Assembly: GCA_020184695.1 (NCBI GenBank)
Contig: JAANOX010000271.1
Coordinates: 62,001-126,000, forward strand
DNA from: Histomonas meleagridis 2922-C6/04-290x
Lineage: Eukaryota > Protista > Parabasalia
Direction: 5' to 3'
DNA length: 64,000 bases
The position numbers and the translations under genes were made by a program. Of the stretch, positions 9,953 through 36,280 are shown one piece after another. The notes beneath the pieces are model-generated. The model saw only the letters and a program-made list of their open reading frames with translations. It did no database searches and was not told where the DNA came from. Each line of letters begins with the position of its first letter. Position 1 is the stretch's first letter.

Positions 9953-10269
9953 TAAAATAAACATTTATGGCACTTTAACATCCTATTGTTTATTTTTTAT
10001 TTAAGATCATTTTATTCCTGAATGAACTCGTAAATATATTTGATTTCATAAATGTATAAGTTATTGAGCAACTTAATGATACATTAATGGGTCCAAATGT
10101 CTTGTTTTGATATAAATTTCGAACTTTACTAAAATTTTATATGACAAAACGAAAAAATTTTGCTGAAATTAAATCAGAAGAAGAATTTACACGCTAATAA
10201 TATTAATTTATTTTAAACATAAATCTTTTAAGGCACAATGCAATTCTTTTTTCCCATTTCAATGTTTTC

Positions 10270-10620
10270 TCTGTCTCAACTGGCATCATCTCTCAGAAAA
10301 TGCTTCAGTGATATCAGTGTTTAACCTTGCTGAGGCTTCAAGGTATTTTGCATTGTATACTGCTGCAAGTACCTTCTTGCACTAACTTTCTAATATCTCT
10401 AAATATTTTACCTATGTTGTGAGCCGAAATGTTGCTGAAATTAACGGTCAATAAACGGTCACCAATTTCCAAAACTTTATTTATTCAAAAAGTCGAATAC
10501 GTCAAAATATTTTGAGGTGGCTGCAATTATTTTTAACGTCCTCTATCGTGTTTAAATCAAGTAAAGTATTTAATCTCATTGGTTACTTTACAGAAAAGTG
10601 ACGTTGAAACAATCTGAGTG
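10270..10620 (-). pseudogene. Possible decayed Ras-family small GTPase fragment
   Basis: Minus-strand pieces read NTIED (effector-loop-like) and AVYNAKYLEASARLNTDITEAF (G5-like), separated by stops and frameshifts. Confidence 0.3.
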
Positions 10621-10757
10621 GGGAGATAAAAATTCCAAAATTAACAAATGAACAAATATTTTACCTAAACCCATTTTAATAATTGTAAAAATACAAATGA
10701 ATGAAAATATTATAAATAATACTATTGATAAATTTTAAATTTATATATTACATACAT

Positions 10758-21904: not shown

Positions 21905-21969
21905 TTTCACATGAATTAAAGAATTGTTTAATTAAATGTCTTTAACATTAATTTTATTAGTAATTCAGC

Positions 21970-22042
21970 GCCTGCGTAGCATAGTGGTTATTGCGTTCGC
22001 CTTGTAAGCGAAAGGTCGGCGGTCCGACTCCGCTCGCAGGCA
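21970..22042 (+). tRNA. trnT-UGU: tRNA-Thr (anticodon TGT)
   Basis: Acceptor GCCTGCG/CGCAGGC; D-arm TAGCATAGTGGTTATTGC; anticodon arm TTCGC-CT-TGT-AA-GCGAA; T-arm GGCGG-TCCGACT-CCGCT; G1-C72/C2-G71; 73 nt. Confidence 0.95.
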
Positions 22043-22043
22043 A

Positions 22044-22049
22044 TTTTTT
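22044..22049 (+). terminator. Pol III oligo-T terminator
   Basis: T6 run immediately after the tRNA discriminator base. Confidence 0.75.
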
Positions 22050-22575
22050 GATTTTTTTTATATTTAAATCCTTCCCAAACAAACATTCCAATTTTTTTTA
22101 TAAATACATTAATTAATTTGCTTTCCACATTTATTTATAAGTGATTCCTTTCTTGCAATTTTGTTGATCATTAATTAATTAAAAATTTTATGATAATACA
22201 GCTTATTTCTATGATAATATAAGAAGTGGAATTATTGCTCAGCATCAGGATATTTCGGTATTTGAATATAATAATCATCATCTTAGAGATTTGTCTTCCT
22301 TTACTCCCAAACATATATTTCAACTTTTAGTATACGCAATATTACTGAATTCGTTTACATCATTTGAATCTCAAGCATGAAATCAAATATAGCTTTGATT
22401 ATATCGATTACGTCCATGATCACTCCGCATTTTTGTCTTGAATTTATTGTAAATTATACAACAATCAACATTTGAGATAATGTACGAGCTATAACTGGTT
22501 AAAACATTTCGCACATGTAAAGCTCTTCATTATGTACTTGTGATTTTGATATAGGCAATTTATTTTAAAATTTTT

Positions 22576-22735
22576 CATAAAAATCCAGAAGTTGCTAAAA
22601 TCCTTAATGATTCAGGAATTGATGTCAATGCAAAAGATAATACTAATGCAAGAGCACTTTTCACTTGTAAAAATCCAGAAATTGCTAAAATCCTTATTCA
22701 TTCACGAATTCACAACTATAGTTATCGTTCCTAAA
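22576..22735 (+). pseudogene. Short uninterrupted ankyrin fragment (30-aa period)
   Basis: KNPEVAKILNDSGIDVNAKDNTNARALFTCKNPEIAKILIHS; aaaaatccagaa repeats at 22579 and 22669. No start codon and no insert at the hairpin. Confidence 0.6.
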
Positions 22736-23402
22736 TTATTGTAATTAGAAAATGCACTGTCTCCAATTGAAATAACTGAATTTGGTATTACAATATTTGT
22801 TAAAGATGAACAGTAATAAAATGCACTATTCTCGATTGAAATTACAGAAATTGGTATTTAAATAATTGTTAATGATTAAGCATTAAAATATGAATATCCG
22901 GCAATAATTGTAACTGTATCTGGAATTTCAAATGTTAGACTCTATTCCTTCTGGATAACAAACAATTTTCGTGAAATCTTTATTATACAGAATTCCATTG
23001 TTTTCTAAAAATTTATCATTTCTTTCAGATACTTTAAAAGTATGAAATTTGCAAAAGCACCTCCAAATGAAGTAACTGAACTCGGAATTATAACGTTTGT
23101 ATTGTAGAGATTGTTAAGTGCATTTCTTCCTATTGTAGTTACACTTTCACCAATAGTTAGTGATGATAATCAACAATAATAAAATGCATAATCTGCAATT
23201 GTTTTTACCGAATCTGGAATTTTAATATTTGTTAATGAAGTACATCGATAAAATATATTCTCTTCAATTGTTAACACTAAATTTGAAATTTCAATACTTG
23301 TAAATAATGAACAATATGAAAATGTGTTATCCCCAATTGAAGTAACATAATTTGGAATTATAATATTTGCTAATGATGAATAACAAAACACATAACTTCC
23401 AA
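22720..23402 (-). pseudogene. BspA-like LRR_5 pseudogene fragment
   Basis: [67 protein letters not shown], with several stops and frameshifts. Confidence 0.85.
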
Positions 23403-23795
23403 TTGATCATAAAGGAATTGACATTAGCGCCAAAGATATTTATTCGTTATATTAGAAGATCTTTTGAATCATTTGATATTATAATATAATATTTGGAAAT
23501 CATTCAAATTATTTAAAACAGCACTTATATTAGCATGTCAATATTTGCAAATTGAATCAGTTGAGTTACTTCTTAAAAATAAAGGAATTAACATTAATGC
23601 TGCAGGTATTTGAACATTATATTTAATGTTAATTTGAATCTTTTGATATTTCAAATCAATGTTTGGGATTTAATAAATGCATTTAATACAGCTATTTCTA
23701 TCTCAAATGCGAAAGGAAATCCACAGATAATCAAAATGATTAACGATACTCTTCATCTAATATTCCAATTTTTTTTTAAACATATTGGCTCTTAA
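23403..23795 (+). pseudogene. Orphan ankyrin fragment with two 68-nt inserts (locus B)
   Basis: GIDISAKDIY | 23444-23511 | FKTALILACQYLQIESVELLLKNKGININAAGI* | 23614-23681 | FNTAISISNAKGNPQIIKMI; TGG at 23494 and 23664. Confidence 0.8.
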
Positions 23796-23871
23796 AAACT
23801 ATAAATTAATTTCAATTTCTTGAAACATTATTTTAACAATAGAAGTGAACAATTTATCAACAGTTATTTAT

Positions 23872-25299
23872 TTATTCATTTTCTTTATTGCATTGGAACA
23901 ACATTAAATCGATATTACTCAAATCTATCGGCTTATTTTCTTCGAGTTCCCGAATTCTTTGGTTTATTCTATCGATTTCACTTTGTTCGGCTTCATCGTC
24001 TTGTAAACATTTCAAATATATTTCTAATGCGTTTTTGTAGTTTGGGTTTAAAATCAGCGCCAACTTCGCCTCTTCTTTACCTTGCTCGAAATTTCCATCC
24101 AAGTACAAGTAGCAAGAAAACATACAATGATATTCCGCGTTTTCTGGCTCGATGTCGATTGCCATTTTAATGTATTCATTAGCTTGGTCATATTCTTTAG
24201 AGTTCATACACAGTTGCGAGAAATAAAAATAGAAATCAGAAGAACGTTCAGAATTCGATTCCCATTTCTTCATTAGTTCCGTCGCTTTGCTAAATTCTTC
24301 TTTCATGAGACATAATCGTATCATCGAACTTAAAACATCAATATCGTTCGGGTATTTAAGTAACAGTTGGTCGCAGTTACTGATGGCGAAGTTTTTGGGT
24401 TGCTTTTCAGCTAATGAATATAATTTTTCAATTGATATCCATTTATTGGTGATTCGAAATTCATTAAATAAAACGTCGCTAATACGGATGGCTGCACTTG
24501 GTTGGTTGTTGGAGCGAAGAATACGCATAGCAAGAAGAGCTATACGAGAATCAAATGGGCAAATTGATATTGATTTCTTAATGTGGTCAAAAGCACCTTG
24601 TTTATCGCCTCCAAGTGCACACACGTAAGACTTATTATAATGAAGTTGAAAACTATTGGGATTTTGTGTAAGGGCAGTGTCAAGTATTAAATTGCATTTT
24701 TGGAGACATGTGGATAAATTATCAATAGATTGATCAAGAAGCTCCAATTGTACACGGATAGATGATACTTGCTCGGGATAGTCGAGAGTATCAAGAATTG
24801 GGAGAATTCGATCATTGAAATTTCGATACTTACATAAAAAACAACACGCACTTAAAAGAATAGACTTGTTGATCTGAGAGCCATAAGTATCAATGATAAG
24901 AGAAACTGCAAGATAATGATCTACTGCAACAAAAAATGGTAAAATTAAATTGGGACAAGTGAGATCTTGAACAATACGATTGATAACTGGTAAAACAACG
25001 TCAAGTTGGTTCATTTGTGTTGCACAAAATAAAAGAAGAGAAACAGATTGTGATAAAAAATCAGTTTCTAAATAAGTTTTTGGACCATGAAGGTAAATTT
25101 CGACAAGTCTATAAGAAGTTAACATAAGTTCTTCCAGCCAATGGTTGATTTCTCTTGAATATAAATCTGGTGCTGGAGGACACCAATCTCTTCTTGAACA
25201 AATAACTTTTTTTGCATTAACTAAAATCTTCTCTCCTGTCTCTTTATCTAATTTTTTTGATTCATAAGCTTCTCTTAATATATTTATTGGATTCGCCAT
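23872..25299 (-). CDS. TPR-repeat protein
   Basis: Repeated TPR-like helices (ALTQNPNSFQLHYNKSYV; AIDIEPENAEYH; ALILNPNYKNA); probable ATG at 25299. Confidence 0.8.
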   Translation of the reverse strand: MANPINILREAYESKKLDKETGEKILVNAKKVICSRRDWCPPAPDLYSREINHWLEELMLTSYRLVEIYLHGPKTYLETDFLSQSVSLLLFCATQMNQLDVVLPVINRIVQDLTCPNLILPFFVAVDHYLAVSLIIDTYGSQINKSILLSACCFLCKYRNFNDRILPILDTLDYPEQVSSIRVQLELLDQSIDNLSTCLQKCNLILDTALTQNPNSFQLHYNKSYVCALGGDKQGAFDHIKKSISICPFDSRIALLAMRILRSNNQPSAAIRISDVLFNEFRITNKWISIEKLYSLAEKQPKNFAISNCDQLLLKYPNDIDVLSSMIRLCLMKEEFSKATELMKKWESNSERSSDFYFYFSQLCMNSKEYDQANEYIKMAIDIEPENAEYHCMFSCYLYLDGNFEQGKEEAKLALILNPNYKNALEIYLKCLQDDEAEQSEIDRINQRIRELEENKPIDLSNIDLMLFQCNKENE

Positions 25300-25476
25300 A
25301 TGTATTCGAAAGTGCCATTTATTTGACATAACTTTGTTCGAAACGATTTTTAAAAAGCCAAAAGTCAATCTTCAAAACTCATTAAAAATCAATATGAAAT
25401 CCTTATAACTGTATTTAAAAAATATGTTTTGCTTTGATAAAAAAATTATATTTAACAGAATATTTATGTTATACAT

Positions 25477-26772
25477 TTATGTTATAGGGCAATGAAGATA
25501 CTCGAGTATTTTCTTTGCAGTTGTTACCGTTATTGATCCCGATTGAATCAATTTTTCCGCAACTACATCAATTTCTTCTCCAATAGCACCAGCCTCACAC
25601 GCGATATTTTTACTATGTAATTTCATATGTCCTGATGATATACCTTGTGTCACTAATGCTCTTAGTGCAGCAAAGTTTTGTGCTAATCCAACAGCAGCTA
25701 TAACTCGAGCTAAGTCATCTGCAGTCTTAACTTTCATCATTTTCCGAAATGTTCGTACTGATTCGTTTCGATTTATAGATCCGCCAACAGTACCAACGGG
25801 TATAGGAATGACGATTTCCCCAATCAAAATATCATTAGAAATCCAAAAATTCGTTAATGCAGGATTAGAATCTTTAAGTGTCGCATATGAATGAATCGCA
25901 GATTCAACAGCTCGAACATCATTACCAGTAGCTAAAACAACAGCAGATATACCATTCATAATCCCTTTGCGATGTGTTGCAGCACGATATGGTTCGGATT
26001 TTGCTAGATTAGCAGCCATGATTATCTTATTCGCAACTTCAAAACCATCAAAGCCGGGACATGTAAGATCAGAAATTCTCCACTTCCCTTGCGCTCGAAC
26101 AAGACGCTTAGTAGAAAGATTGGTAAGAATTCCCATTAATGGTTCGAATCCAAATTCTTGTTGAACATATGATTTTATGGATTCGCAAGCTTTGGTTACG
26201 CAATTTGCTCCCATGGAATCAATAACAGCAACATGGATTTCAATAATTAACATATTACCCGATTCTGTATTAACTTCTTTAAGAGTAATACTTTGTGTGC
26301 CTCCTTTTCGTTGAACCATACCTGGCATAGATTCGTTGGCAACTTCTTTGATTTGGTCAATATGTTCTTCGAGAATTTTTAAATTGGTTGGACTTGAATT
26401 TGGTGCCAAGAAAACTGCTTGGCCTGTACATACATTTGGATCTGCAATGGTTGTAAATCCACCACAAGGGCGAGCTAGCTTTGCTGCAAAAGATGCTCCA
26501 GCAATAACACTCGGTTCTTCAGTTGCATAAGGAATAATACGATCAACTCCATCAACAATAAAATTTGTGGCAACACCAACAGGTGTTATTTGTCTAGTTA
26601 TAAAATTTTCAATCATTGTATCACATGTTCCGAGATTTAGACAAAAATCCAATGAATGAAATGTTTTTTGATCTTCCTCAGTGAGATTGCTAAATGTAGC
26701 TACCTTATTACGGCGTTCATCTACAGAAAGCTTAAAAAATCCAGGGATAGCAGAGGTCATTTCAAGGGCCAT
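25477..26772 (-). CDS. mvaA: Class II (bacterial-type) hydroxymethylglutaryl-CoA reductase
   Basis: No membrane domain; IPGFFKLSVDERR, DTMIEN, PYATEEPSVIAGAS, DSMGAN, ILTNL, RAATHRKGIMNGI, GLAQNFAALRALVTQGISSGHMKLH, all class II HMGR motifs. Confidence 0.92.
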   Translation of the reverse strand: MALEMTSAIPGFFKLSVDERRNKVATFSNLTEEDQKTFHSLDFCLNLGTCDTMIENFITRQITPVGVATNFIVDGVDRIIPYATEEPSVIAGASFAAKLARPCGGFTTIADPNVCTGQAVFLAPNSSPTNLKILEEHIDQIKEVANESMPGMVQRKGGTQSITLKEVNTESGNMLIIEIHVAVIDSMGANCVTKACESIKSYVQQEFGFEPLMGILTNLSTKRLVRAQGKWRISDLTCPGFDGFEVANKIIMAANLAKSEPYRAATHRKGIMNGISAVVLATGNDVRAVESAIHSYATLKDSNPALTNFWISNDILIGEIVIPIPVGTVGGSINRNESVRTFRKMMKVKTADDLARVIAAVGLAQNFAALRALVTQGISSGHMKLHSKNIACEAGAIGEEIDVVAEKLIQSGSITVTTAKKILEYLHCPIT

Positions 26773-26933
26773 GCCGTCTTATCAAAAAGTTGAATATTTA
26801 AATTGAATATGATCGATTTTCTCATGTCTTCAGACAAATAAGATATTGTGATAAATTTCATTTAATATCATTTAAAATTATCAAACATGTTATAAATTAA
26901 AAAGTTTTTCAACTGTATATTTTTTTATCTAGC

Positions 26934-27288
26934 TCAAGAAGACATTTTAGTAAAATGTTCAAGATTTCCATTTTGAGATGCTAAAACAATTCCATAAAAT
27001 ATTTTAAACAAATTTGATATAATATTTTCAAACATAAAATCATAAAAATAAAAATCATTTAAAATAAATTAACATAAATACTATTAATGATACATTTATT
27101 TCCAAGAAGTAATTTAATTATTCTCACATGACCATTTTTAGCTGAATAAGCAAGTGCTTTACAAAATATATTAAACAATTTCGAAATATTATTTAAAAAT
27201 AATTTTTATGTATATCTTTGGTGTTTAAATCAATTCCATCTTGTTCGAGAAGTAATTTAACTGCTTCTTTTAAGCCATTTTCAGATGT
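26934..27288 (-). pseudogene. Decayed ankyrin fragment with two inserts (locus D)
   Basis: TSENGLKEAVKLLLEQDGIDLNTKDIH | 27207-27167 (41 nt) | FCKALAYSAKNGHVRIIKLLLGNKCIINSIY | 27073-27000 (74 nt) | FYGIVLASQNGNLEHF. Confidence 0.75.
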
Positions 27289-27489
27289 TCCCAATCATTT
27301 GGCACTGAATTTTTATCAGTATGTTGAAACAATTGTGATATTAAATAACCGTTTTCTTTGGAACTTTATTTTTTGTTTATTTTACAAAAAGTGGTAAAAA
27401 TTTTTTTGCTTGCAAGTAATTCAAATTATTAAAAGAAATTACTATTGTACGCAAAGACACTGCTGAGTAAATGCTTAGCAAAGGTTTAG

Positions 27490-27750
27490 TTAAAATATGA
27501 TTGGATAACTAATTTTATCTATTAAACCAAACAATTCTTTTGGTTTCTCTCTTGCATACTTTGTATCCCATCCTGTGTCTATTAAAATTTTTCCTTTAGG
27601 ATGTTCTATTAAATAACAGGATATAGGTAAAATTAATTTCTTATCTTCTCCTCTAAATAAACCTGTCACTGCTAAAGGATTATTTTCATGAATAGGAAGA
27701 GCTCAGTCAACTCGTACACTTCCTGTATGAAATACATGTATTTTTATCAT
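27490..27750 (-). pseudogene. 5' fragment of a bacterial N-acyl homoserine lactonase-family (MBL-fold) gene
   Basis: MIKIHVFHTGSVRVD*ALPIHENNPLAVTGLFRGEDKKLILPISCYLIEHPKGKILIDTGWDTKYA...; in-frame TGA at codon 16; truncated before the HxHxDH motif. Confidence 0.75.
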
Positions 27751-28453
27751 ATGAAATTTTTTTGCACATAAACGTCACTTTTACGAATCGATTTTCCTAA
27801 ATAAGAATTTGCTGATTAAAAGACTATTTTAATTGTGTGCTATACATGTAATAGAATACAGCCATATATTTATGTTAAAAAAAATTGATTTAAATATTTT
27901 AATCAATTAATAATTTCAAACTAAGTAATTTTAAAAAAATTCAGTAATGTTTCACATATGATATGATTCTATAACTTATCATTCGTTATGATAAATTAAT
28001 GATTAATTCTGAATCATGATTGAACTGTACCAAAACAAAACGATTGATCATGACTAATCTGTGCTTTTCTGGATTTTGACTTAGTTTGTTTGGTAATTTT
28101 GAATGCTATGTGGTCATCCCACAATCAAACACCAACCAACACAATTCAAAATTTCAATTATCTCAACGATAGCTCGTATTGAATTATTTCAGACGGCTGA
28201 TAACAATAAAATTGTTTTTTTTCTTGTTATTTAAAGGCAATATTTTATTTTTTTAAATATTGATATTAAACAATTTTCAAGAGAAAATATTTTATTATTT
28301 TTTTTTACATAATATTGAGTGAGTTTAAAATTTCTTTATTTAGAACATCTTTATTCCAATTCAGAAGAAATTTCGGTTTCCATCGACCAAACACAATTTT
28401 TCCGCTTTTTAAGTGTGTCTGATAGTTAAGAAAAAAACTGACCATTTTTGTTC

Positions 28454-31249
28454 ATGGAAGATAAAAGCCGATTTCTCAGCTCTTACACTCTTCCCAATGG
28501 TGTTGAACTTAAGAACCGTATTATGATGGCCCCCATGACCACATGTACAGGTTATCATGATGGTACAGTTACTGAAGAATTAGTTGAATATTATTCCGCT
28601 CGTGCAGGTTCTATTGGCGCAATTATTGTAGAATGTTGTTATATCGACCCTCTTGGTGCAGCATTTCCAGGCGCCCTTGGTATCACTACTGACGATCACA
28701 TTTATGGTCTTTCTAAAATTGCTAAAGCAATTCAAGCTAAAGGCACTAAAGCCATTCTTCAACTTTACCATGGTGGTCGTATGGTTGATCCACTTCTTAT
28801 TGGTGGTCGTCAACCAGTTGGTGCAACAGGAATTCCAGCACCACGTCCAAACATGCCAATTCCACGTGAACTTACAGCACAAGAAGTTGAAGACATGATC
28901 CAAAAGTTTGGTCAAGCAGTTCGTCGTGCAATTCAAGCTGGTTTTGATGGAGTTGAAATCCATGGTGCTAACACATATCTTATTCAACAATTCTATTCAG
29001 GCAACTCCAACCAACGTACTGATGAATGGGGTGGCAATCGTGAGAAGCGAGCCAAATTCCCATGTGCAATTGTTGATATCACAGAGAAGATGGTCAAGCA
29101 ATATGCTGATGATTCCTTCATTGTTGGCTATCGATTTTCACCTGAAGAACTTGAACCACAAGGTATTACATGGGAAGATAGCATGTATCTCTTAGAACTT
29201 TTAGCCGAGAAAGATGTCATTGATTACTTCCACATCTCACTTGGATACTATTTACGTCCATCCATCCTTAACAAAGAAGATAAGACTGCATTAATTGACA
29301 AATACATCAAACAACGATCACAACGCTTAGCCAAGATACCAATTGTCGGTGTTGGCGCCATCGTTAATGCCGAAAATGTCATCTCAGCACTTGACCATGG
29401 CTATGATTTAGTTGCCGTCGGACACGCGTGCATTGCATATCCAGATTGGGTCGACCGCATTGCTAATGGCGAACAATTAAAGTTATTCATAGACAGTACT
29501 AAACGTGAAGAGCTTTTTATTCCGGAACCATTATGGCGTTTCCCACTCGTTGGCTCAATGATCATTGATACCAGTGCACAAGAAAGTCGCTTTAAACCAG
29601 GCACATATACAGAACAAGTTCAAGATGATGACAAAGAACTTGTTATTGATGTTACATTAGAACAAGATAAGATCAGTGAGATTGTCCTTAAAGAAGCGCC
29701 TGAAATGGATGTCGAATTCAAGACATCATTTGAAGAAATTAGAAGTCGTATATTAGAAAAGAATACGCCACATGTCGACGCAGTTTCAGGAGCTACAAAT
29801 CAATCAGAAGCAGTCAAACGTGCAGTCAAGAAAGCTATTAGTGAGTCAAGTCGTATATTAGCTAAGGAAGAAGGAGGCGATTTACCATTGATTCCAGATG
29901 ATTATGAAATCGTCGTTATTGGTACAGGTGGAGCAGGAATGTCAGCAGCTATCCAAGCGCATGATGAAGGATGCCGTGTATTAATTGTTGAGAAGATGCC
30001 AACAATTGGTGGTAACACAATTAAGTCATCTGTTGGTATGAACGCAGCAGAAACTCGTTATCAAAAGATCAAAGGAATTAAAGATAGCAAAGATTTGTTC
30101 TATGAAGAAACAATGAAAGGAGGAAAGAACATGAACAATCCATTATTATTACGAAGATTTGTAGATCGTGCACCAGAAGCTATTGAATGGTTAGCACATA
30201 GAGGTATCATGTTAAATGACATTACAATCACTGGTGGAATGAGTGTCGATAGAGCACATAGACCTAGAGATAGTTCAGCTGTCGGTGGTTATTTAGTGTC
30301 TGGACTTTTACGTAATGTTAACAAACGTAACATTGATATAATGACTGATACACGTGTAATCGATATATTAGTCGATGAAAACAAAAGAGTATATGCAGTT
30401 AAGTTAATTGTTGAAGAAGAAACAGAAGTATTAATCCATTGTAAAGCAGTGATTGTTGCAACTGGTGGTTTCTCTGCTAACCAAGAAATGGTTGTTAAAT
30501 ATCGCCCAGAACTTAAAGGATTTGTTACAACAAATCATAAAGGCGCTACTGGTGAAGGTATTATATTATTAGAACGTATTGGCGCAGGTACTGTTGATAT
30601 GGATCAAATTCAAATCCATCCAACAGTAGAACAAACAACTTCTTATTTGATATCTGAGTCAATTAGAGGTGGCGGAGCTATTTTGGTTAATCAAAAAGGT
30701 GAACGTTTCTTTAATGAATTAGAAACACGTGATAAAGTATCAGCCGCTATCATTGCATTACCAGAGAAATATTCATATATAATATTCGATGAACAAATCC
30801 ATCAAAAGAATAAGGCTACTGATGAATATATCACTAAAGGATTAACAGTTTCTGCTGATTCACCTGAAGAACTCGCTAAGAAGATCGGACTTGACGTCGA
30901 TACTTTCAAGAAGACATTGGAAAGATTTAATACTTTCGTGGAGAAACAACATGATGATGACTTCGGTAGAACGACAGGTTTAAGGTCTAAGATCAACCAA
31001 GGACCTTACTTCGCTATCAAGATAGCTCCTGGCGTTCACCATACTATGGGTGGTATTACAATCAATGTCGAAACTGAAGTACTCGATAAGGACTCTAATG
31101 TAATTAAAGGCGCTTATGCAGCTGGTGAAGTATGCGGCGGTATCCACGGCGGTAATAGAATCGGTGGTAACGCTGTAGCTGATATTATTATATTTGGTAC
31201 TTTGGCTGGTCATAACGCAGCAGTTTATGCTCAGAATCTAAAGAAATAA
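28454..31249 (+). CDS. Flavocytochrome c-type NADH:fumarate reductase-like enzyme (OYE/NADH:flavin oxidoreductase + FMN-binding + FAD-binding domains), bacterial type
   Basis: LKNRIMMAPMT...GFDGVEIHGANTYL (OYE); HVDAVSGATNQS (covalent FMN motif DxxSGAT); VVIGTGGAG, ATGGF, QIHPT, RGGG, HHTMGG, GEVCGGIHGGNRIGGNA (fumarate reductase flavoprotein). Confidence 0.92.
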   Translation: MEDKSRFLSSYTLPNGVELKNRIMMAPMTTCTGYHDGTVTEELVEYYSARAGSIGAIIVECCYIDPLGAAFPGALGITTDDHIYGLSKIAKAIQAKGTKAILQLYHGGRMVDPLLIGGRQPVGATGIPAPRPNMPIPRELTAQEVEDMIQKFGQAVRRAIQAGFDGVEIHGANTYLIQQFYSGNSNQRTDEWGGNREKRAKFPCAIVDITEKMVKQYADDSFIVGYRFSPEELEPQGITWEDSMYLLELLAEKDVIDYFHISLGYYLRPSILNKEDKTALIDKYIKQRSQRLAKIPIVGVGAIVNAENVISALDHGYDLVAVGHACIAYPDWVDRIANGEQLKLFIDSTKREELFIPEPLWRFPLVGSMIIDTSAQESRFKPGTYTEQVQDDDKELVIDVTLEQDKISEIVLKEAPEMDVEFKTSFEEIRSRILEKNTPHVDAVSGATNQSEAVKRAVKKAISESSRILAKEEGGDLPLIPDDYEIVVIGTGGAGMSAAIQAHDEGCRVLIVEKMPTIGGNTIKSSVGMNAAETRYQKIKGIKDSKDLFYEETMKGGKNMNNPLLLRRFVDRAPEAIEWLAHRGIMLNDITITGGMSVDRAHRPRDSSAVGGYLVSGLLRNVNKRNIDIMTDTRVIDILVDENKRVYAVKLIVEEETEVLIHCKAVIVATGGFSANQEMVVKYRPELKGFVTTNHKGATGEGIILLERIGAGTVDMDQIQIHPTVEQTTSYLISESIRGGGAILVNQKGERFFNELETRDKVSAAIIALPEKYSYIIFDEQIHQKNKATDEYITKGLTVSADSPEELAKKIGLDVDTFKKTLERFNTFVEKQHDDDFGRTTGLRSKINQGPYFAIKIAPGVHHTMGGITINVETEVLDKDSNVIKGAYAAGEVCGGIHGGNRIGGNAVADIIIFGTLAGHNAAVYAQNLKK

Positions 31250-31346
31250 GATAAAATCTAATTGAAAATCGACTTTTTGACTTAAAATATTTTGGAAATA
31301 AACGTTCGTTAAATCACATCAAACATTGGATACGTTAAAGTTTTCT

Positions 31347-31967
31347 TTACTGGACATTACACATTTCCTTTTGCCGGTTTCCGGACGCTTCTTTCTTCTG
31401 CTTCTGCTTCTTAGGCGCTTCCTTTTGGGGCTCCTCTTTCTTTTCGCATTCTGCGCTGGCGATGGCGTTGGCCAAATAAGAAAGGAGAAGGAAAGTAGCA
31501 GAACCAACACCCGACCCGGTTTCACAATTGGTTTCCTCGGAAATTTGTGCCGAAATTTCTTTTCGTTTAGAAACTAGATCTTCATGTGTAACTATGACTT
31601 TCGGATCGGCATGATTGGCATTTGCTATTAAAAACTTAACGATTAAATTCGGACAGTTGGCATCAACAAGCTTATTGTATTCATCTATGGCATGAAATGA
31701 TGTAATATTTTCAATATCATATACAAAAATAACTACATCTGCATCCTTGAGTTGTCTCCCAATAATTGAGAGATAGCGGTCTTCTCCTGATGTGTCATTA
31801 ATCATTAAGATTATTTTTTGGCCTTTGAAATCAAATTCATTCCTATTGAAATCAATACCCACTGTTGGCTTAGATACTTCATCAATTTGCAGGATCTTGT
31901 TCTTTAACCTTGTTTTCCCTGTTTGTGGGGCTCCTACAAAAAAAACTCTGAAAAGTCTTTTTTCCAT
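31347..31967 (-). CDS. Divergent Rab-like small GTPase
   Basis: GAPQTGKT (G1), PTVGIDF (G2), NDTSGED (G3), VYDI, ANANHAD (G4-like), C-terminal CNVQ; ATG at 31967. Confidence 0.8.
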   Translation of the reverse strand: MEKRLFRVFFVGAPQTGKTRLKNKILQIDEVSKPTVGIDFNRNEFDFKGQKIILMINDTSGEDRYLSIIGRQLKDADVVIFVYDIENITSFHAIDEYNKLVDANCPNLIVKFLIANANHADPKVIVTHEDLVSKRKEISAQISEETNCETGSGVGSATFLLLSYLANAIASAECEKKEEPQKEAPKKQKQKKEASGNRQKEMCNVQ

Positions 31968-32649
31968 AAAAATGTTTAAATTAACCATCGTCTTAATTGA
32001 AAAAGTTTGCATTTTTTGGTCAAAAAGTGGTTGTTGGAATCGGAATTCCAAGCATTTTAATCGTATATTCAACTGAATTTTACAACACATTCGACTTTTT
32101 CACAACAAATTTGTTTGAAACCGGAACATTTGATCAATTGCAAAAGATCCGAGTGTCAAAATAATTACTCATTCATACGAAAATATAAACCAGATACGAA
32201 TCAAATGAAAATCTTATCTTTTATAAATGGTTTCATCATAAAAATTTTCTAAATTATATCTTTTCAAAACATTGAAGCTTTATCAATTTTGTTCCTTCTT
32301 TTATGAAAACAAACACCAATGATTCGATGTTTTTTGACTCTTTTAAAAAAATTATTGTACGATTCTTTACTAAACGTAATCATTTCTCTTTTAATTTTCT
32401 TATATTTTTATTTGTTTCGTGTTAATCTTTTCTTTTTATTTTATTTTCTTTTAACATCATTTTAATTCTTTTGTTTCTATTTGGGAAAAATGTAAAAACA
32501 TTTGATGAATCAGCTTTTCGACCATGCTCACCATCATTGACAAATGTTATAATTCTATATTCAGTTATAACAATTGGAATTTCTGTATTTAATGCATTGG
32601 AAAATATGACTTTAATTCGATTCATGTTGTAGTGAAAGATCTTTTAGAA

Positions 32650-33515
32650 GTGGTTTCCTAGATTGGCTTACATCTTTTGTTGTTGAAGGTGATGATTGTG
32701 ACACATATTGTTATGGAGGTTCAATTCTTTCTTTAGCAGTTGAACAACTTGATATTCTTTCAATTGGTCTCTAAATGATTTGGTAAAGCTCATCAAATTC
32801 CATCTTCCATTTATAAGGTTGGTAGATATCCAGTTTATACATTTAATGAATATATCAAACAGCCAAAATGTACACTTAATATTGAAAGATTTGAAGGTAA
32901 AGTCATTGTTACATGTGATCCACAATTTAAAGTTGATTGTCATGCAGATCATTCATGGCATTTATTCATTAATGATCTTCCAGGAAAGAATTATAAAGCT
33001 GAACTTTGGCTACATCCACAAGGTTTTCCATTATGGTATGGAAGGAAATAAACCTTCATATCTTACACAACATTCCATTACATGAAAGAAAGAGAATTAA
33101 TGTTAAAGGCTTTGGTATTCGAGAACTTTATGTTGCTGTGGATAGTTCTGCTTCTGAACTTGGTGGTTGGGAAGATTGGGGATTAATTTCATTTAATGAA
33201 ATCCACTCATCTTTATATGATATGAGAATGGGTATGAAAGATCTTTCAACCCATGATACCGAAAACAAAAAACACTTTCCGGAAGGCAAAATGATTATCA
33301 CACATGAAGATTAGGCATTCTTACGAGAACTTGATGGTCAACAAAATATAATATAACTATTGAAGTCGAAGATGGTGTTTATGAAGTTCATTCGCACGTT
33401 GATAACGCTACAACATGGGGAGTTACATTTAAAGTTCCTGATAATCCAGTTGCAACATTAATTTTTGATCATGTAGAAGGAACATTTACTTCAAAAGATG
33501 GAAAAGTTAATTAAC
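32650..33515 (+). pseudogene. Disrupted coding sequence of unknown family
   Basis: Consecutive protein-like segments in changing frames (GFLDWLTSFVVEGDDCDTYCYGG; FGKAHQIPSS...LWLHPQGFPLWYGRK*; INVKGFGIRELYVAVDSS...; EVEDGVYEVHSHVDNATTWG...). Confidence 0.45.
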
Positions 33516-33757
33516 AGGAGAACATATATGTCAATTTGTCAATGGCATGCTTATCCAAAGTTTTTACCTGATATCAGAACACATTATGTAATGACATCAT
33601 TTTTATATCAGGCACAACACTCTCTTTTCTCAAGTGACATGTGCAATTACAAAAATTTGTTAACAGTTGATATGTAAAGTATATAAATATTTACTCAAAA
33701 TATTCTATGAGATAATTCTTAAATTGTATATAAATTAATCTCACGACCACCTAAACA

Positions 33758-33763
33758 TCATTT
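33758..33763 (+). promoter_or_regulatory. Inr element TCATTT upstream of apbE
   Basis: TCATTT four bases before the ATG at 33768; matches the trichomonad TCAYW initiator. Confidence 0.55.
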
Positions 33764-33767
33764 AAAC

Positions 33768-34763
33768 ATGGAAGATGAAGATCGAGTTTACAGTTACACA
33801 ACTGTTTTGATGGGGTCACCAATTTTATTAAAACTTTTTGTCCATGACGAGTCCGTTGCACAAGAAGTATTTAATTTAATCAAACATTTCGAAGATATTT
33901 TTACTGTTAATCGCGATAAATCAGAAGTGATGGATATTAACCATGCAGCTGGTATGTATCCTGTTTCAGTTAGTCAGCCTGTTTATGAGTTAATCAAATG
34001 TGCCAAAGCTTATAGTATGATCCCTGGCAGTGCATTGAATCTCACCATTGGCCCACTTGTTAAACTCTGGAAAATTGGATTTAATGGGAAGTCAGTTCCA
34101 CCACCAAATGAGATCCGTGATCTCTTACCATTAACACGTCCTGACCAAGTTGTACTCAACGACAGTTCCCGTAGTGTTTTTCTTTCGAATTTTGGCATGG
34201 AAATAGATCTTGGAGGCATTGCGAAAGGTTATATAGCTGATTGCGTTCGAGATTTTCTTAAGAAGAAAAAATCTATACATAGCGGCCTTATTAATCTCGG
34301 TGGTAATGTTTATGCAATGTCATCGCCGCTCGGAGATTGGGGAATCGGACTCAAGAAGCCGTTTGCAAAAACTGCCGATGAAGTCGTTGGTGTTATTCAA
34401 GTCTCCAACAAATCTGTTGTGACATCTGGTGTTTATGAGAGATACTTTGAACAGGACGGGAAGATGTATCATCATATTCTTAATCCTGCAACAGGGTATC
34501 CATTAGATAATGAATTGTTAAGTGTAACAATCATATCAAATGATTCATTGGACGGCGATATATGGACAACTATAATATATGGAATGGGCGTTAAGAAAGG
34601 TGTGAAAGAATTAAGCAAAAGAAATGACATAGAAGCAATATTCATTACAAGAAATAATGAAATTATTTATTGCTCAAGTAACATGTTTAGGTTTTCATTG
34701 AAAGATGAAAGCTATAAAGTGATTAATGAAAATGTGGAACAATATGTCAATGAAAAATATTAA
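33768..34763 (+). CDS. apbE: FAD:protein FMN transferase (flavin transferase)
   Basis: LMGS, SEVMDIN, LNLTIGPLVKLWKIGF, IDLGGIAKGYIAD, NLGGN, VVTSGVYERYF, YHHILNPATGYP, SVTIIS, DIWTT: the complete ApbE motif set. No signal peptide or lipobox. Confidence 0.95.
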   Translation: MEDEDRVYSYTTVLMGSPILLKLFVHDESVAQEVFNLIKHFEDIFTVNRDKSEVMDINHAAGMYPVSVSQPVYELIKCAKAYSMIPGSALNLTIGPLVKLWKIGFNGKSVPPPNEIRDLLPLTRPDQVVLNDSSRSVFLSNFGMEIDLGGIAKGYIADCVRDFLKKKKSIHSGLINLGGNVYAMSSPLGDWGIGLKKPFAKTADEVVGVIQVSNKSVVTSGVYERYFEQDGKMYHHILNPATGYPLDNELLSVTIISNDSLDGDIWTTIIYGMGVKKGVKELSKRNDIEAIFITRNNEIIYCSSNMFRFSLKDESYKVINENVEQYVNEKY

Positions 34764-35024
34764 TAGAAATAAAAATTGTTTCTTTTCTTTATAAGCCCTT
34801 TTAATTTATCATGTAAAAAATTTGTTTTGATAGTTGAATTAAATATCAATTTTCAGTGAGATTCTGATATTGGATAAAGATTTAACAAATAGCTTTGATC
34901 GCAAGAAGGAGCTGTTGGCAATTTATTTTATATAAATATTATTGTTTTAATGTTTGGTAAAATTTAGATTTTGAAGATTGTTCGGATAACTAAAAATGCC
35001 ACTTTTAAAATATTAAATTTTTAC

Positions 35025-35903
35025 ATGAAAAATAATCAAAACTTCTTCAAACTACGCAATGGAAGAGATGTTATAGATTTGGCTTCAACTCCAGATAACA
35101 CTGTGAATGAATTAATGCAAGAAATTCGTGTAGTTACAGATGTATTACCTTCAAGGCAACAAATTAGTTATGGCGTTCCTCCACGGCTTCTCCCTAATGA
35201 TGCAGGTTCTCTTGACACTAAACTTTCAGATTTTGGAATTCGTCAACGCACAATATTTATTTTAACACCTCGACAAACACGTGATGCGCCAATCCATGAA
35301 ACGTCCTGTCTCTCTGAAGCCGTTAAAATTCCAATTCCTGCCGATAATTCATGTTTATTTAATTCTATCTCATATCTATGTACAGGTTCATCTAATCGCG
35401 GCCCAGAGCTTCGTTCAGAAATTGTTCACGAAATAAGGACACATCCAGATGTGTACACACCTGCTACACTTGGCTGTTCTGCAGAAGAATATTGTCATAC
35501 GATTCTCGATCCCAAAAACTGGGGCGGCTACATCGAGATGAACATTCTTTCTAAGCTTTTTAATGTCGAAATTTGTGTTATGTACATTGAAGAATGTAAA
35601 ATTATTCCTGTTAATAGTTGTAATGCGACGAAACGAATTTTCATTTTATATGACAACATTCACTACGACGCAGTAGTGTTCAAAGGCTTTGGAGTAAACG
35701 AACGAAGGATTGTGGATGCCAATGACATGAAAGCGTACTCTTTGGCAAGCGAAATGCTGCAGGTACTGCACACGTCAGGCGCATTCACGAACACGAAAAC
35801 TGCAAAGTTAAAGTGCGAGCAGTGCGGGAAGGTGTTCAACGGAAGTAAAGAGGCGGAAAGACACGGAAACGAAACGGGACACGTAAGATTCACTCAATGC
35901 TGA
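35025..35903 (+). CDS. OTU1: OTU1/YOD1-like deubiquitinase
   Basis: Ubiquitin-like N-terminus, IPADNSCLF (catalytic Cys), WGGYIE, YDNIHYD (His), C-terminal C2H2 finger CEQC...HGNETGH. Confidence 0.9.
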   Translation: MKNNQNFFKLRNGRDVIDLASTPDNTVNELMQEIRVVTDVLPSRQQISYGVPPRLLPNDAGSLDTKLSDFGIRQRTIFILTPRQTRDAPIHETSCLSEAVKIPIPADNSCLFNSISYLCTGSSNRGPELRSEIVHEIRTHPDVYTPATLGCSAEEYCHTILDPKNWGGYIEMNILSKLFNVEICVMYIEECKIIPVNSCNATKRIFILYDNIHYDAVVFKGFGVNERRIVDANDMKAYSLASEMLQVLHTSGAFTNTKTAKLKCEQCGKVFNGSKEAERHGNETGHVRFTQC

Positions 35904-36280
35904 TATCAATAAAAGTGTTCGCATTAGAGTTTTGGTTTATAAAATGTTGAATTTGTTTGTGGTGAGCGAATCGAAAATTTGGTTATTATGAATTATGGAG
36001 TAGGCATACTTTTCTTAATTGGTAAATACATACTGAAATATATCAAAGTTTCTCTTTGATAATTTTATCATCATCACTTATTAGACTAGCTTAATAACAA
36101 AAAAAAGTGAAAATTTTATTATGGTTTATGTAGCAAAAGGATTTTTCTTATTTGTTGAAAGTTATATATTGAATATTTTGGATTTTATTAATGGTATTTC
36201 AAATGAAAATATGAAAATATTTATATAGACGATTTACCTAAATAGAACCTTTATTTATTATTATATATGATTAAACAAAA

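Follow-up and report, generated by a model that had tools for sequence, protein, structure and literature searches.

A predicted NADH:fumarate reductase and its putative flavin transferase, probably transferred together from an enterobacterial-type donor to Histomonas meleagridis

The two genes and the DNA between them

The window (the whole 64,000-nucleotide stretch analysed) is nuclear DNA of H. meleagridis rather than of a Tritrichomonas. It contains two genes, here called FRD and ApbE, encoded on the same strand (Table 1). From its sequence, the product of the first appears to be a soluble NADH:fumarate reductase consisting of three domains in series, OYE-like, then FMN_bind, then FAD_binding_2. 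An earlier note on this DNA had described the ORF as an OYE-FMN-flavocytochrome c carrying DAVSGAT, and Pfam, the NCBIfam flavocytochrome c equivalog NF005064 (643 bits, cut-off 542) and the translation all agree. Relative to bacterial relatives there is no N-terminal extension.

Table 1. Positions of genes and features in the window
Feature	Position	Strand	Evidence
FRD coding sequence, 931 aa	28454–31249	+	ORF and translation; ATG at 28454, stop ends at 31249
OYE-like (Oxidored_FMN) domain	28502–29473	+	PF00724, residues 17–340, E 3.6e-72
FMN_bind domain	29645–29839	+	PF04205, residues 398–462, E 2.5e-7
Predicted flavinylation motif D442-A-V-S-G-A-T448	29777–29797	+	Direct translation
FAD_binding_2 domain	29909–31177	+	PF00890, residues 486–908, E 2.6e-81
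FRD mRNA 3' end (TAAA 31252–31255; poly(A) addition 31264–31268)	31252–31268	+	RNA contigs
Ras-superfamily small GTPase, 213-aa model	31347–31988 (ORF on to 32090)	-	PF00071, E 6.9e-18; gene model GCA_020186115.1
Frame-broken ORF pieces, 52, 90, 76 and 59 aa	32616–33511	+	Three-frame reading
TCATTT, initiator-like motif	33758–33763	+	Sequence; 5 nt before ApbE ATG
ApbE coding sequence, 331 aa	33768–34763	+	ORF; PF02424 full length, 1–266 of 266, E 2.7e-77

Residues H170 and N173 of the OYE-like domain are invariant in alignment A1. The role of a domain bearing these residues is known from the Klebsiella pneumoniae FRD (bioRxiv 10.1101/2022.01.20.477176), and by analogy this domain is presumed to be the NADH-oxidising module. 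The FMN_bind domain (31.7 bits, cut-off 22) is predicted to carry covalent FMN, with T448 as the FMN-phosphoester site. Its DAVSGAT conforms to the pattern recognised by ApbE, D-x-x-[S/T]-G-A-[S/T] (PMC12052999), and the motif is present in 82 of 82 bacterial orthologues and in every protist copy.

Among solved structures, the flavocytochrome c3 fumarate reductase (Fcc3) of Shewanella frigidimarina (PDB 1QJD) matches the FAD_binding_2 domain best (E 4e-124). In the alignment, H365, T377, E378, R381, R402, H504 and R544 of Fcc3 correspond to the fumarate-site residues H722, S734, E735, R738, R759, H862 and R902. The substrate and proton-path residues of both Fcc3 and the K. pneumoniae FRD are intact, the lone change being T377 to Ser, which is common to Klebsiella and 82 of 82 bacterial orthologues. 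Fcc3 differs in being periplasmic, with a tetrahaem electron donor domain and neither an OYE nor an FMN_bind domain.

Enzymes of the same domain composition reduce acrylate, cinnamate or urocanate, and work on the Vibrio ruber cinnamate reductase (Crd) indicates that carboxylate-binding residues alone are insufficient to set substrate specificity. The protein could be a flavinylated NADH:2-enoate reductase whose physiological substrate is urocanate, acrylate, methacrylate or a cinnamate, but we consider this unlikely. Motif II is of non-fumarate type in both Crd and the NADH:acrylate reductase (ARD) of Vibrio harveyi, as is Motif III of ARD, whereas motifs I, II and III of the H. meleagridis protein are all fumarate-type. 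The active-site block HPTVEQ.TSYLISESIRG has one mismatch, at a non-catalytic position, against the Klebsiella enzyme, whose family is characterised as fumarate reductase and shares 69% full-length identity. Fcc3 is also a far better match than urocanate reductase (E 8e-91), a fumarase and a carboxylate carrier adjoin the donor operon, and succinate fermentation occurs in the host clade.

The second gene begins 2518 bp past the FRD stop and is predicted to encode an ApbE-type FAD:protein FMN transferase. As the earlier note had stated, it is signal-less; it has neither an N-terminal extension nor a hydrophobic leader relative to its bacterial partners, which are also signal-less. The closest solved structure is FmnB of Listeria monocytogenes (PDB 7ESA, E 2e-69), a flavin transferase of extracellular electron transfer. 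S220, R225, H236 and D264 align with FmnB S257, R262, H273 and D301, and the catalytic centre, consisting of the Asp-Ser-His triad and the Arg, appears intact. Unlike the leaderless H. meleagridis protein, FmnB is a secreted lipoprotein acting outside the membrane. The TCATTT that had been read as an Inr is present. However, this hexamer is expected by chance 1.9 times per kb on each strand, so its occurrence near ApbE is weak evidence alone.

The gene between FRD and ApbE, previously called Rab-like, does encode a eukaryotic Ras-family GTPase. It lies on the minus strand, which had not been stated. Its translation ends in CNVQ and it is covered by RNA contigs (31355–32380 in run X3, 31421–31945 in X5); it is an expressed host gene. 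The frame-broken ORF pieces that follow give no Pfam match at E <= 1, and look like a decayed host gene outside the bacterial module. The genes flanking the pair are eukaryotic as well (SNF2/bromodomain, SAC3, Kelch, BspA, OTU and Ras). A second H. meleagridis assembly (GCA_020186115.1) is identical across window positions 20454–36102, although the two share a single parental isolate and are non-independent.

Transcripts and codon composition

RNA contigs cover the FRD coding sequence with zero mismatches. Poly(A) addition occurs 15–19 nt past the stop codon, and the TAAA just upstream may be a trichomonad poly(A) signal. In a contig from X3 the FRD end at 31268 is followed by A20, a contig from X7 (2013, a separate study) has the same end and an A-rich tail, and a contig from X5 also stops at 31268. 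Two independent RNA studies show a monocistronic FRD mRNA with a poly(A) tail, poly(A) RNA having been one of the checks proposed earlier. None of the RNA contigs joins FRD to ApbE. ApbE has a separate transcript represented by contigs of 1620 and 1199 nt, the 5' end of which differs by run (from 33769 in X5, back to about 33354 in X3).

GC3 is 0.25 for FRD and 0.29 for ApbE, against 0.24–0.29 in host genes and 0.59–0.67 in the bacterial genes. With dN of 0.24–0.30 and dS saturated, the transferred genes are under purifying selection. The pair is fully host-adapted in H. meleagridis, with host-like codon composition and its own transcript for each gene, and the domestication that had been proposed is borne out.

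These data bear on whether the genes derive from contaminating bacteria or from a chimeric join in the assembly. Axenic culture of H. meleagridis is impossible (PMC11676859) and it is kept in co-culture with bacteria, and the FRD part is missing from DNA contigs, a gap which proves nothing. Against this explanation stand the low GC3, the poly(A)-tailed mRNA in two studies, the eukaryotic genes on either side of and between FRD and ApbE, the same arrangement in the second assembly (same parental isolate), and a closest bacterial protein of at most 71% identity. DNA runs X1 and X2 also contain every sampled word of the gene. Contamination or a chimeric join is in practice refuted.

Bacterial relatives, gene trees and linkage

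The best named matches of both proteins are from Enterobacteriaceae (63–71% identity). Over its full length FRD is 69–71% identical to Enterobacteriaceae proteins annotated as 'flavocytochrome c', including K. pneumoniae cluster P0246, and 69% identical to a Klebsiella cluster of 925 aa. ApbE is 63–66% identical to the apbE products encoded after frd in Enterobacteriaceae. No bacterial protein more than 71% identical to either was found. Among 82 bacterial loci, 71 carry apbE downstream of frd in the same orientation, and in 69 it starts within about 200 bp of the end of the frd match. In Enterobacteriaceae it starts 60 bp after frd, and the two adjoin a class-I fumarase, a carrier of the CitMHS/Na-sulfate-symporter type and a two-component sensor; these genes do not adjoin the H. 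meleagridis pair. The order frd then apbE on one strand is the standard Enterobacterales arrangement.

Related copies of both genes were also recovered on AT-rich sequences (L103, P0002/P0123 and P0003/P0122) from metagenome or run assemblies, which we infer to be eukaryotic from their AT-richness, from gene-poor flanks or from eukaryotic neighbours. The ApbE tree has the topology (L103,(T. foetus,(window,(P0122,P0123)))) with support of 95/96, and places the protist clade, beside core Enterobacteriaceae, within an Enterobacteriaceae clade (100/99). The FRD tree has the topology (L103,(window,(P0003,P0002))) with support of 100/99, and the protist clade is sister to a 20-row core Enterobacteriaceae clade, both joined at 100/99. 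The enterobacterial resemblance stated in the earlier note holds in both best matches and trees, and its expectation of congruent phylogenies is in keeping with a shared donor group and an AU test in which the FRD topology is not rejected by the ApbE data (p-AU 0.263). AT-rich composition could draw L103 toward the protist clade; the AT-rich Gilliamella is not drawn. The operon is mobile among bacteria too (Tolumonas and Pantoea in the trees), so the donor can be named only as enterobacterial-type.

Spacing between the two genes is 144 bp on L103 and 425 bp on the P0002/P0123 contig, compared with 2518 bp in the window. In Tritrichomonas foetus there is no FRD within 10 kb of ApbE, and searches did not retrieve an FRD of the OYE / FMN_bind / FAD_binding_2 type from this species. 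The presence of both genes together before the Tritrichomonas/Histomonas split thus rests on ApbE and the outlying L103 pair.

Two separate transfers, with proximity arising by chance, would be in line with the unlinked T. foetus ApbE and the numerous bacterial genes in parabasalid genomes. However, gene order and strand are identical to the bacterial operon, the pair is directly adjacent in two relatives, both genes show one donor group and one branching order of protist copies, and the AU test finds no conflict. This reading is already disfavoured and seems very improbable. The bacterial gene order, the shared donor group and the adjacency in relatives favour the transferred operon fragment of the earlier note.

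Proposed function and comparison with known systems

It seems likely that one transfer of an enterobacterial frd-apbE was followed by host domestication, giving an FMNylated NADH:fumarate reductase that yields succinate. The two-gene operon would have been acquired in a single event by the ancestor of the Tritrichomonadida lineages sampled (Histomonas, T. foetus and three AT-rich relatives). In H. meleagridis the spacer would have grown from a few tens of bp to 2.5 kb, gaining the inverted Ras-family GTPase gene and the decayed ORF. A cytosolic ApbE, with FAD and Mg2+, would attach FMN by a phosphoester link to Thr448 in the FMN_bind domain. Non-covalent FMN in the OYE-like domain would be reduced by NADH, the covalent FMN would relay electrons to the FAD of FAD_binding_2, and this FAD would turn fumarate into succinate. 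Glycolytic NADH would be re-oxidised, with succinate as a fermentation end product. The genes, their origin, linkage history and expression and the intact catalytic residues come from the data above. The steps are drawn from the K. pneumoniae enzyme, and flavinylation of T448 by ApbE, NADH and fumarate as substrates and a cytosolic location are likewise expected by analogy.

That enzyme, the cytoplasmic NADH:fumarate oxidoreductase B5XRB0 (UniProt), occurs with a signal-less ApbE (Bertsova et al. 2014, 2020). It shares with H. meleagridis FRD the same three domains in order, the active-site block, the type of flavinylation motif (DAISGAT in Klebsiella) and a signal-less partner ApbE, encoded directly downstream in bacterial relatives. 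Unlike the bacterial genes, the H. meleagridis pair is nuclear and consists of two monocistronic units with a host gene between them, its FRD message is polyadenylated, and its GC3 is far from the bacterial value of about 0.6. The K. pneumoniae enzyme is characterised, whereas its H. meleagridis counterpart is known from sequence and transcripts.

The kinetoplastid FRDs (Trypanosoma brucei FRDg and Leptomonas pyrrhocoris FRD) are also eukaryotic soluble NADH:fumarate reductases, as is predicted for H. meleagridis. They require phosphoester-linked FMN from an ApbE-type transferase, and succinate is excreted; the same is predicted here. However, the kinetoplastid enzyme is glycosomal, has an ApbE-like domain fused at its N-terminus where H. 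meleagridis has a separate gene, and oxidises NADH by a FAD_binding_6 rather than an OYE domain. The kinetoplastid ApbE domain is <25% identical to bacterial ApbEs, compared with about 65% for H. meleagridis ApbE and its enterobacterial counterparts. The earlier note's account of the cytoplasmic Klebsiella system and the kinetoplastid fusion is in agreement with the literature (PMC12052999; bioRxiv 10.1101/2020.12.30.424822). In the literature searched, neither transfer of frd-apbE to a protist nor a free-standing eukaryotic ApbE is described.

Since the pair has drifted apart in Histomonas and is unlinked in T. foetus, ApbE might be a relic or be retained for a different target, with the protist FRD functioning without it. 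This is improbable: the ApbE ORF is whole in five lineages with catalytic residues kept and dN well under the saturated dS, the gene is transcribed, the FRD acceptor motif is strictly kept, and flavinylation of the K. pneumoniae FRD requires cytoplasmic ApbE (PMC12052999).

Succinate fermentation via fumarase and FRD, with highly expressed pathway genes, has been reported for Tritrichomonadida (bioRxiv 10.1101/2022.08.26.505490), and succinate increases in caeca infected with H. meleagridis (bioRxiv 10.64898/2026.09.24.753691). The literature searched does not document that Histomonas itself excretes succinate, and the link to host tuft cells raised in the earlier note is shown for murine Tritrichomonas, being an extrapolation for H. 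meleagridis. In this poultry gut parasite, the FRD-ApbE module probably accounts for the succinate fermentation of these protists.

The predicted reductase and its flavin transferase

The earlier note had described a 931-aa OYE-FMN-flavocytochrome c ORF with a DAVSGAT motif, and this description stands. The encoded protein, a predicted soluble NADH:fumarate reductase (FRD), carries an OYE-like, an FMN_bind and a FAD_binding_2 domain in the order of the Klebsiella pneumoniae FRD type, which is one polypeptide of about 925 aa, and aligns with Enterobacteriaceae orthologues over 100% of its length. It also passes the NCBIfam flavocytochrome c equivalog NF005064 (643.4 bits against a cut-off of 542, residues 449-927). 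The flavinylation motif, D442-A-V-S-G-A-T448, lies in the FMN_bind domain; the recognition motif of ApbE, the flavin transferase predicted to attach FMN to the FRD threonine, is D-x-x-[S/T]-G-A-[S/T] (PMC12052999).

Features of the frd-apbE region (nucleotide positions on the whole stretch; domain positions in FRD residues)
Feature	Position	Strand	Remarks
FRD ORF	28454-31249	+	931 aa
Oxidored_FMN (OYE-like) domain of FRD	residues 17-340		Pfam
FMN_bind domain of FRD	residues 398-462		Pfam
FAD_binding_2 domain of FRD	residues 486-908		Pfam
Ras-superfamily GTPase gene	31347-31988	-	between FRD and ApbE
Frame-broken ORF pieces	32616-33511	+	52, 90, 76 and 59 aa; about 0.9 kb
ApbE ORF	33768-34763	+	331 aa

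The FAD_binding_2 domain has its best alignment to the Shewanella flavocytochrome c3 fumarate reductase Fcc3 (E 4e-124), with urocanate reductase at 8e-91. Functional residues of Fcc3 were taken from bioRxiv 10.1101/2022.01.20.477176. The C4-carboxylate residues (Fcc3 R402, H504 and R544) are kept in FRD as R759, H862 and R902, and the proton path (Fcc3 E378, R381 and R402) as E735, R738 and R759. Fumarate reductases differ from other 2-enoate reductases in their C1-carboxylate residues (bioRxiv 10.1101/2022.01.20.477176), of which one is kept (Fcc3 H365, FRD H722) and the other shows a conservative change (Fcc3 T377, FRD S734). Serine at the latter position is common to the Klebsiella cluster and to 82/82 bacterial orthologues. 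The block HPTVEQ.TSYLISESIRG is also shared with the Klebsiella enzyme, except at one non-catalytic position.

The signal-less ApbE that had been claimed 2.5 kb downstream is likewise present, on the same strand and separated from FRD by a gap of 2518 bp. PF02424 is matched over the full protein (profile 1-266 of 266; 260 bits, cut-off 25.6), and the predicted structure (Atlas model, pTM 0.91) has a TM of 0.94 to a bacterial ApbE cluster. In the alignment with the Listeria monocytogenes transferase FmnB (7ESA, E 2e-69), the catalytic Ser-His-Asp and the Arg are kept, with S220, R225, H236 and D264 equivalent to FmnB S257, R262, H273 and D301 (7ESA chain numbering +20). The catalytic residues of Vc ApbE, S241/H257/D285, correspond to FmnB S257/H273/D301. 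From residue 1 on, the N terminus (MEDEDRVYSYTT...) lines up with signal-less bacterial partners, and it has no lipoprotein signal. Assignment to the periplasmic lipoprotein ApbE (NCBIfam NF007774/PRK10461 equivalog) is ruled out, with 119.5 bits against a cut-off of 498. Judged by sequence, the window protein belongs to the cytoplasmic ApbE branch and not to the periplasmic equivalog. A TCATTT initiator (Inr) had also been proposed for this gene. The hexamer is indeed found 5 nt before the ATG, but it carries little weight because it occurs 1.9 times per kb per strand.

The orthologue in T. foetus, OHS94298.1 (positions 10001-10972 of locus L001, from MLAK01001328.1), has no leader peptide and falls in the cytoplasmic, frd-linked branch. 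Its database name, 'membrane-associated lipoprotein involved in thiamine biosynthesis', is misleading.

All sequence-level defining features of the K. pneumoniae system of FRD and cytoplasmic ApbE are found in the two Histomonas proteins, which are predicted members of it. That the cytoplasmic K. pneumoniae FRD is FMNylated by ApbE, as previously stated, agrees with the literature, in which the soluble FRD requires the signal-less ApbE for its flavinylation (PMC12052999). The electron path in that enzyme runs from NADH to the OYE FMN, the covalent FMN, the FAD and finally fumarate (bioRxiv 10.1101/2022.01.20.477176). By analogy, we infer that electrons would take the same path in Histomonas FRD. 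In the alignment neither FRD nor ApbE has an N-terminal extension over bacterial orthologues, and the bacterial partner ApbEs are signal-less too, so a cytosolic location is expected for both proteins. Hydrogenosomal targeting is rejected on the same lack of an extension. Comparison of the protist copies gives a dN of 0.24-0.30 and a dS that is saturated or undefined, which indicates purifying selection.

Host setting, transcripts and spacer

The window is AT-rich (GC 0.29), and its eukaryotic genes include a SNF2/bromodomain gene, SAC3/GANP, Kelch, an OTU deubiquitinase, the Ras-family GTPase and two BspA-type leucine-rich-repeat genes. An exact copy of the FRD protein occurs on WSYJ01000158.1 of a second assembly, GCA_020186115.1, which is from Histomonas meleagridis 2922-C6/04-10x (PMC8529796, PMC13735942). 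Positions 20454-36102 are identical in the two assemblies, with the common gene order TPR, HMG-CoA reductase, FRD, Ras, ApbE, OTU. From 36103 (15649 in the locus from the second assembly, L102) the assemblies lose register in intergenic DNA before a BspA-like gene, which suggests an indel. Two other genes of the window deserve mention. The HMG-CoA reductase (25477-26772, minus strand, 431 aa, GC3 0.20) consists of the catalytic domain alone (PF00368 full length), with no membrane domain. A 494-aa ORF at 58629-60113 (plus strand) sits at a local GC peak (GC 0.40) and has no Pfam match; its GC3 of 0.39 is the highest among the genes checked, OTU excepted.

Bacterial contamination as the source of the two genes is ruled out by composition, divergence, transcripts and DNA reads. 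GC3 is 0.25 for FRD and 0.29 for ApbE, as against 0.24-0.29 for neighbouring host genes and 0.59-0.67 for the enterobacterial orthologues, and nucleotide identity to Enterobacter is 0.61-0.63. In RNA run X3, a 2940-nt contig covers 28349-31268 with zero mismatches and continues into A20. The same end, with an A-rich tail, is seen for FRD RNA in X7, which dates from 2013 and comes from a different study, and 31268 is again the end in X5. A separate RNA contig (31355-32380) belongs to the GTPase gene, and ApbE is covered by one contig of 1620 nt over about 33354-34973 and another of 1199 nt from 33769 to about 34967. FRD and ApbE are not linked by any contig from the RNA runs. All sampled words of the FRD gene are present in DNA runs X1 and X2; contigs of X1 cover only 32798-34379, in a set from which a filter removes records, so that gaps carry no meaning. 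The neighbours, GC3, poly(A) and separate contigs show integration in host DNA, a host-like composition and eukaryotic-type transcripts. The domestication that had been proposed, with polyadenylated RNA as its check, is borne out by the host-like GC3 and the tails of the FRD RNA. Short stretches of 18-22 nt (29298-29315, 30400-30417, 32462-32483 and 33695-33713) match unrelated contigs of the RNA and DNA runs. These look like chance matches or short dispersed repeats, not joints.

The eukaryotic Rab-like gene that had been noted between FRD and ApbE is the Ras-family GTPase gene, and it lies on the opposite strand. Its switch II is unusual (DTSGED, with no Gln), NHAD replaces NKxD, and the C terminus, CNVQ, resembles a CaaX box. 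The frame-broken pieces that follow read like a decayed protein-coding gene. A reading of these spacer pieces as remnants of bacterial operon neighbours was set aside; the pieces have no Pfam match and no noteworthy repeats. The X3 contig over ApbE, the longer of the two, reaches back into the last of the pieces, to about 33354.

Bacterial origin and decay of linkage

The best named matches of FRD come from Enterobacteriaceae (Pseudocitrobacter, Enterobacter, Yokenella, Cedecea, Kluyvera and Klebsiella), with full-length identities of 68-71%. Those of ApbE come from the same genera at 62-66% identity. In strain FGI 57 and a second genome, apbE begins 60 bp beyond frd, and both genes are on one strand. 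Upstream of the pair lie a divergent carboxylate carrier and a class-I fumarase; downstream lies a two-component sensor. Of 82 bacterial loci (one genome per species), 71 have both genes on one strand with apbE downstream, and for 69 of the 71 no more than about 200 bp lie between the frd match and the start of apbE. The same order, frd then apbE on one strand, is retained in the window, in L103 (a contig from run ERR13935973) and in the metagenome contig that carries the relatives' copies P0002 (FRD) and P0123 (ApbE). The suggestion of an operon fragment resembling enterobacterial sequences agrees with both the matches and the gene order. Even among bacteria the operon is not universal. At nine loci of Yersiniaceae and Erwiniaceae (L044, L045, L049, L052, L056, L060, L063, L065 and L074) an frd paralogue lacks an apbE in the 3 kb downstream of it, and some of these genomes, e.g. 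Rahnella, Pantoea and Winslowiella, also have an frd-apbE locus.

Trees were inferred with IQ-TREE under LG+C20 PMSF. The ApbE tree gives the order (L103,(T. foetus,(window,(P0122,P0123)))) with support of 95/96, inside an Enterobacteriaceae clade at 100/99; P0122 is a further ApbE copy from an AT-rich relative. The FRD tree gives (L103,(window,(P0003,P0002))) at 100/99, P0003 being a relative's FRD. Here the protist clade is sister to a 20-row core Enterobacteriaceae clade (99/96), both together are supported at 100/99, and Tolumonas is the next branch. Nesting of the FRD protist clade inside crown Enterobacteriaceae was set aside in view of this sister position to the sampled core clade. The FRD-like arrangement is not rejected by the ApbE data (delta lnL 1.5, p-AU 0.263). 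For each gene, the eukaryotic copies form one strongly supported clade among or beside one bacterial group. Both trees indicate one donor group and one shared branching order, so the congruence that had been set as a check is found.

The operon also moves among bacteria, as seen in Tolumonas, in one Pantoea copy and in the grouping of Mangrovibacter with Rahnella. Enterobacterial-type is therefore the best name for the donor, which would be a lineage beside Enterobacteriaceae or an unsampled one within them. The frd-apbE pair of one locus titled as a Firmicute (Vagococcus sp. WN89Y, L016) falls within the Enterobacteriaceae clade, beside Kosakonia and Superficieibacter; this is either a mislabelled or contaminated assembly or a recent transfer.

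The distance between frd and apbE varies among the protists. It is 144 bp in L103 and 425 bp, from gene coordinates and with no gene called between, in the P0002/P0123 contig (5080 bp, metagenome ERZ17292903). In Histomonas the gap holds an inverted host gene, and in T. foetus the 10 kb to either side of ApbE contain no FRD. Placed on the tree, these distances make tight linkage the ancestral state, as in bacteria, with independent decay in different lineages. L103 is an AT-rich Logan contig of 5541 bp (GC 0.37) with 1.4 kb of ORF-free DNA upstream. The GC3 of its two genes is 0.28 and 0.24, each of them is the basal branch of the protist clade in its tree, and the contig is probably from another parabasalid. 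The contigs of P0003 and P0122 hold eukaryotic genes (PSP1, RPC5, Arf, MIF4G and STI1). A T. foetus FRD is absent from the 120 matches listed in a single-sequence search and from a profile search with three protist FRDs; a fragmented gene model below the search length window could account for this. A scan of JGI metagenomes with the protist FRD alignment returned distant OYE-type matches only (26-52% identity) and no close relative of the protist FRDs.

Succinate fermentation and free-standing ApbE in Tritrichomonadida

Histomonas, which causes blackhead disease in poultry, belongs to Tritrichomonadida and is not a Tritrichomonas. For histomonosis there is no licensed treatment (PMC11676859). 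T. foetus, T. musculis, T. casperi and Monocercomonas maintain redox balance via fumarase and fumarate reductase, with the genes of this pathway highly expressed, and Trichomonadida produce lactate instead (Gerrick et al., bioRxiv 10.1101/2022.08.26.505490). That study makes no mention of gene transfer or ApbE, and the H. meleagridis genome paper none of fumarate, succinate, flavin or gene transfer. Succinate accumulates in H. meleagridis-infected caeca (bioRxiv 10.64898/2026.09.24.753691), and the pathways most affected in culture include riboflavin/FMN/FAD metabolism. Both observations are circumstantial.

The ApbE-like domain previously noted in trypanosomatid FRD is confirmed as a fusion to the kinetoplastid reductase (PMC12052999), whereas the Histomonas ApbE is free-standing. 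The NADH-oxidising module also differs, being a FAD_binding_6 domain in kinetoplastids and OYE-like in Histomonas, and the kinetoplastid ApbE domain is <25% identical to bacterial ApbE, in contrast to the enterobacterial identity of the Histomonas protein. The eukaryotic ApbEs in a 2025 review are kinetoplastid fused domains only (PMC12052999). No paper on ApbE or FRD gene transfer in Tritrichomonas or Histomonas was found in a literature search outside which most subscription journals fall. The operon-level transfer into a protist of an enzyme together with its cofactor-attaching enzyme is new, as are the traceable decay of their linkage and the free-standing eukaryotic ApbE, absent from that review.

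With confidence a little short of even, we propose that one transfer of enterobacterial frd-apbE into an early tritrichomonadid was the genetic origin of succinate fermentation in Tritrichomonadida, the trait that separates them from the lactate-producing Trichomonadida and drives tuft-cell type-2 immunity in mice. The same event would have brought the first free-standing eukaryotic ApbE known. The pathway would depend on this enzyme, a step specific to the parasite and absent from the host.

Succinate of gut tritrichomonads is a well-studied immune signal and a redox sink of the parasites (bioRxiv 10.1101/2022.08.26.505490), and in the literature the tritrichomonad "fumarate reductase" is a pathway step with the kind of enzyme unstated. 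The enzyme of Histomonas and its relatives can now be assigned to a precise, biochemically characterised bacterial type, whose maturation enzyme came along. The distances of 144 bp, 425 bp and 2.5 kb with a host gene inserted, and then the unlinked state, form a dated record of how an operon decays in a eukaryote. For work on flavinylation in the eukaryotic cytosol, a stand-alone ApbE from a eukaryote, with one obvious client, would offer a clean system. To our knowledge animals have neither this type of FRD nor ApbE, and both are therefore conceivable drug targets in histomonosis and in bovine and feline trichomonosis.
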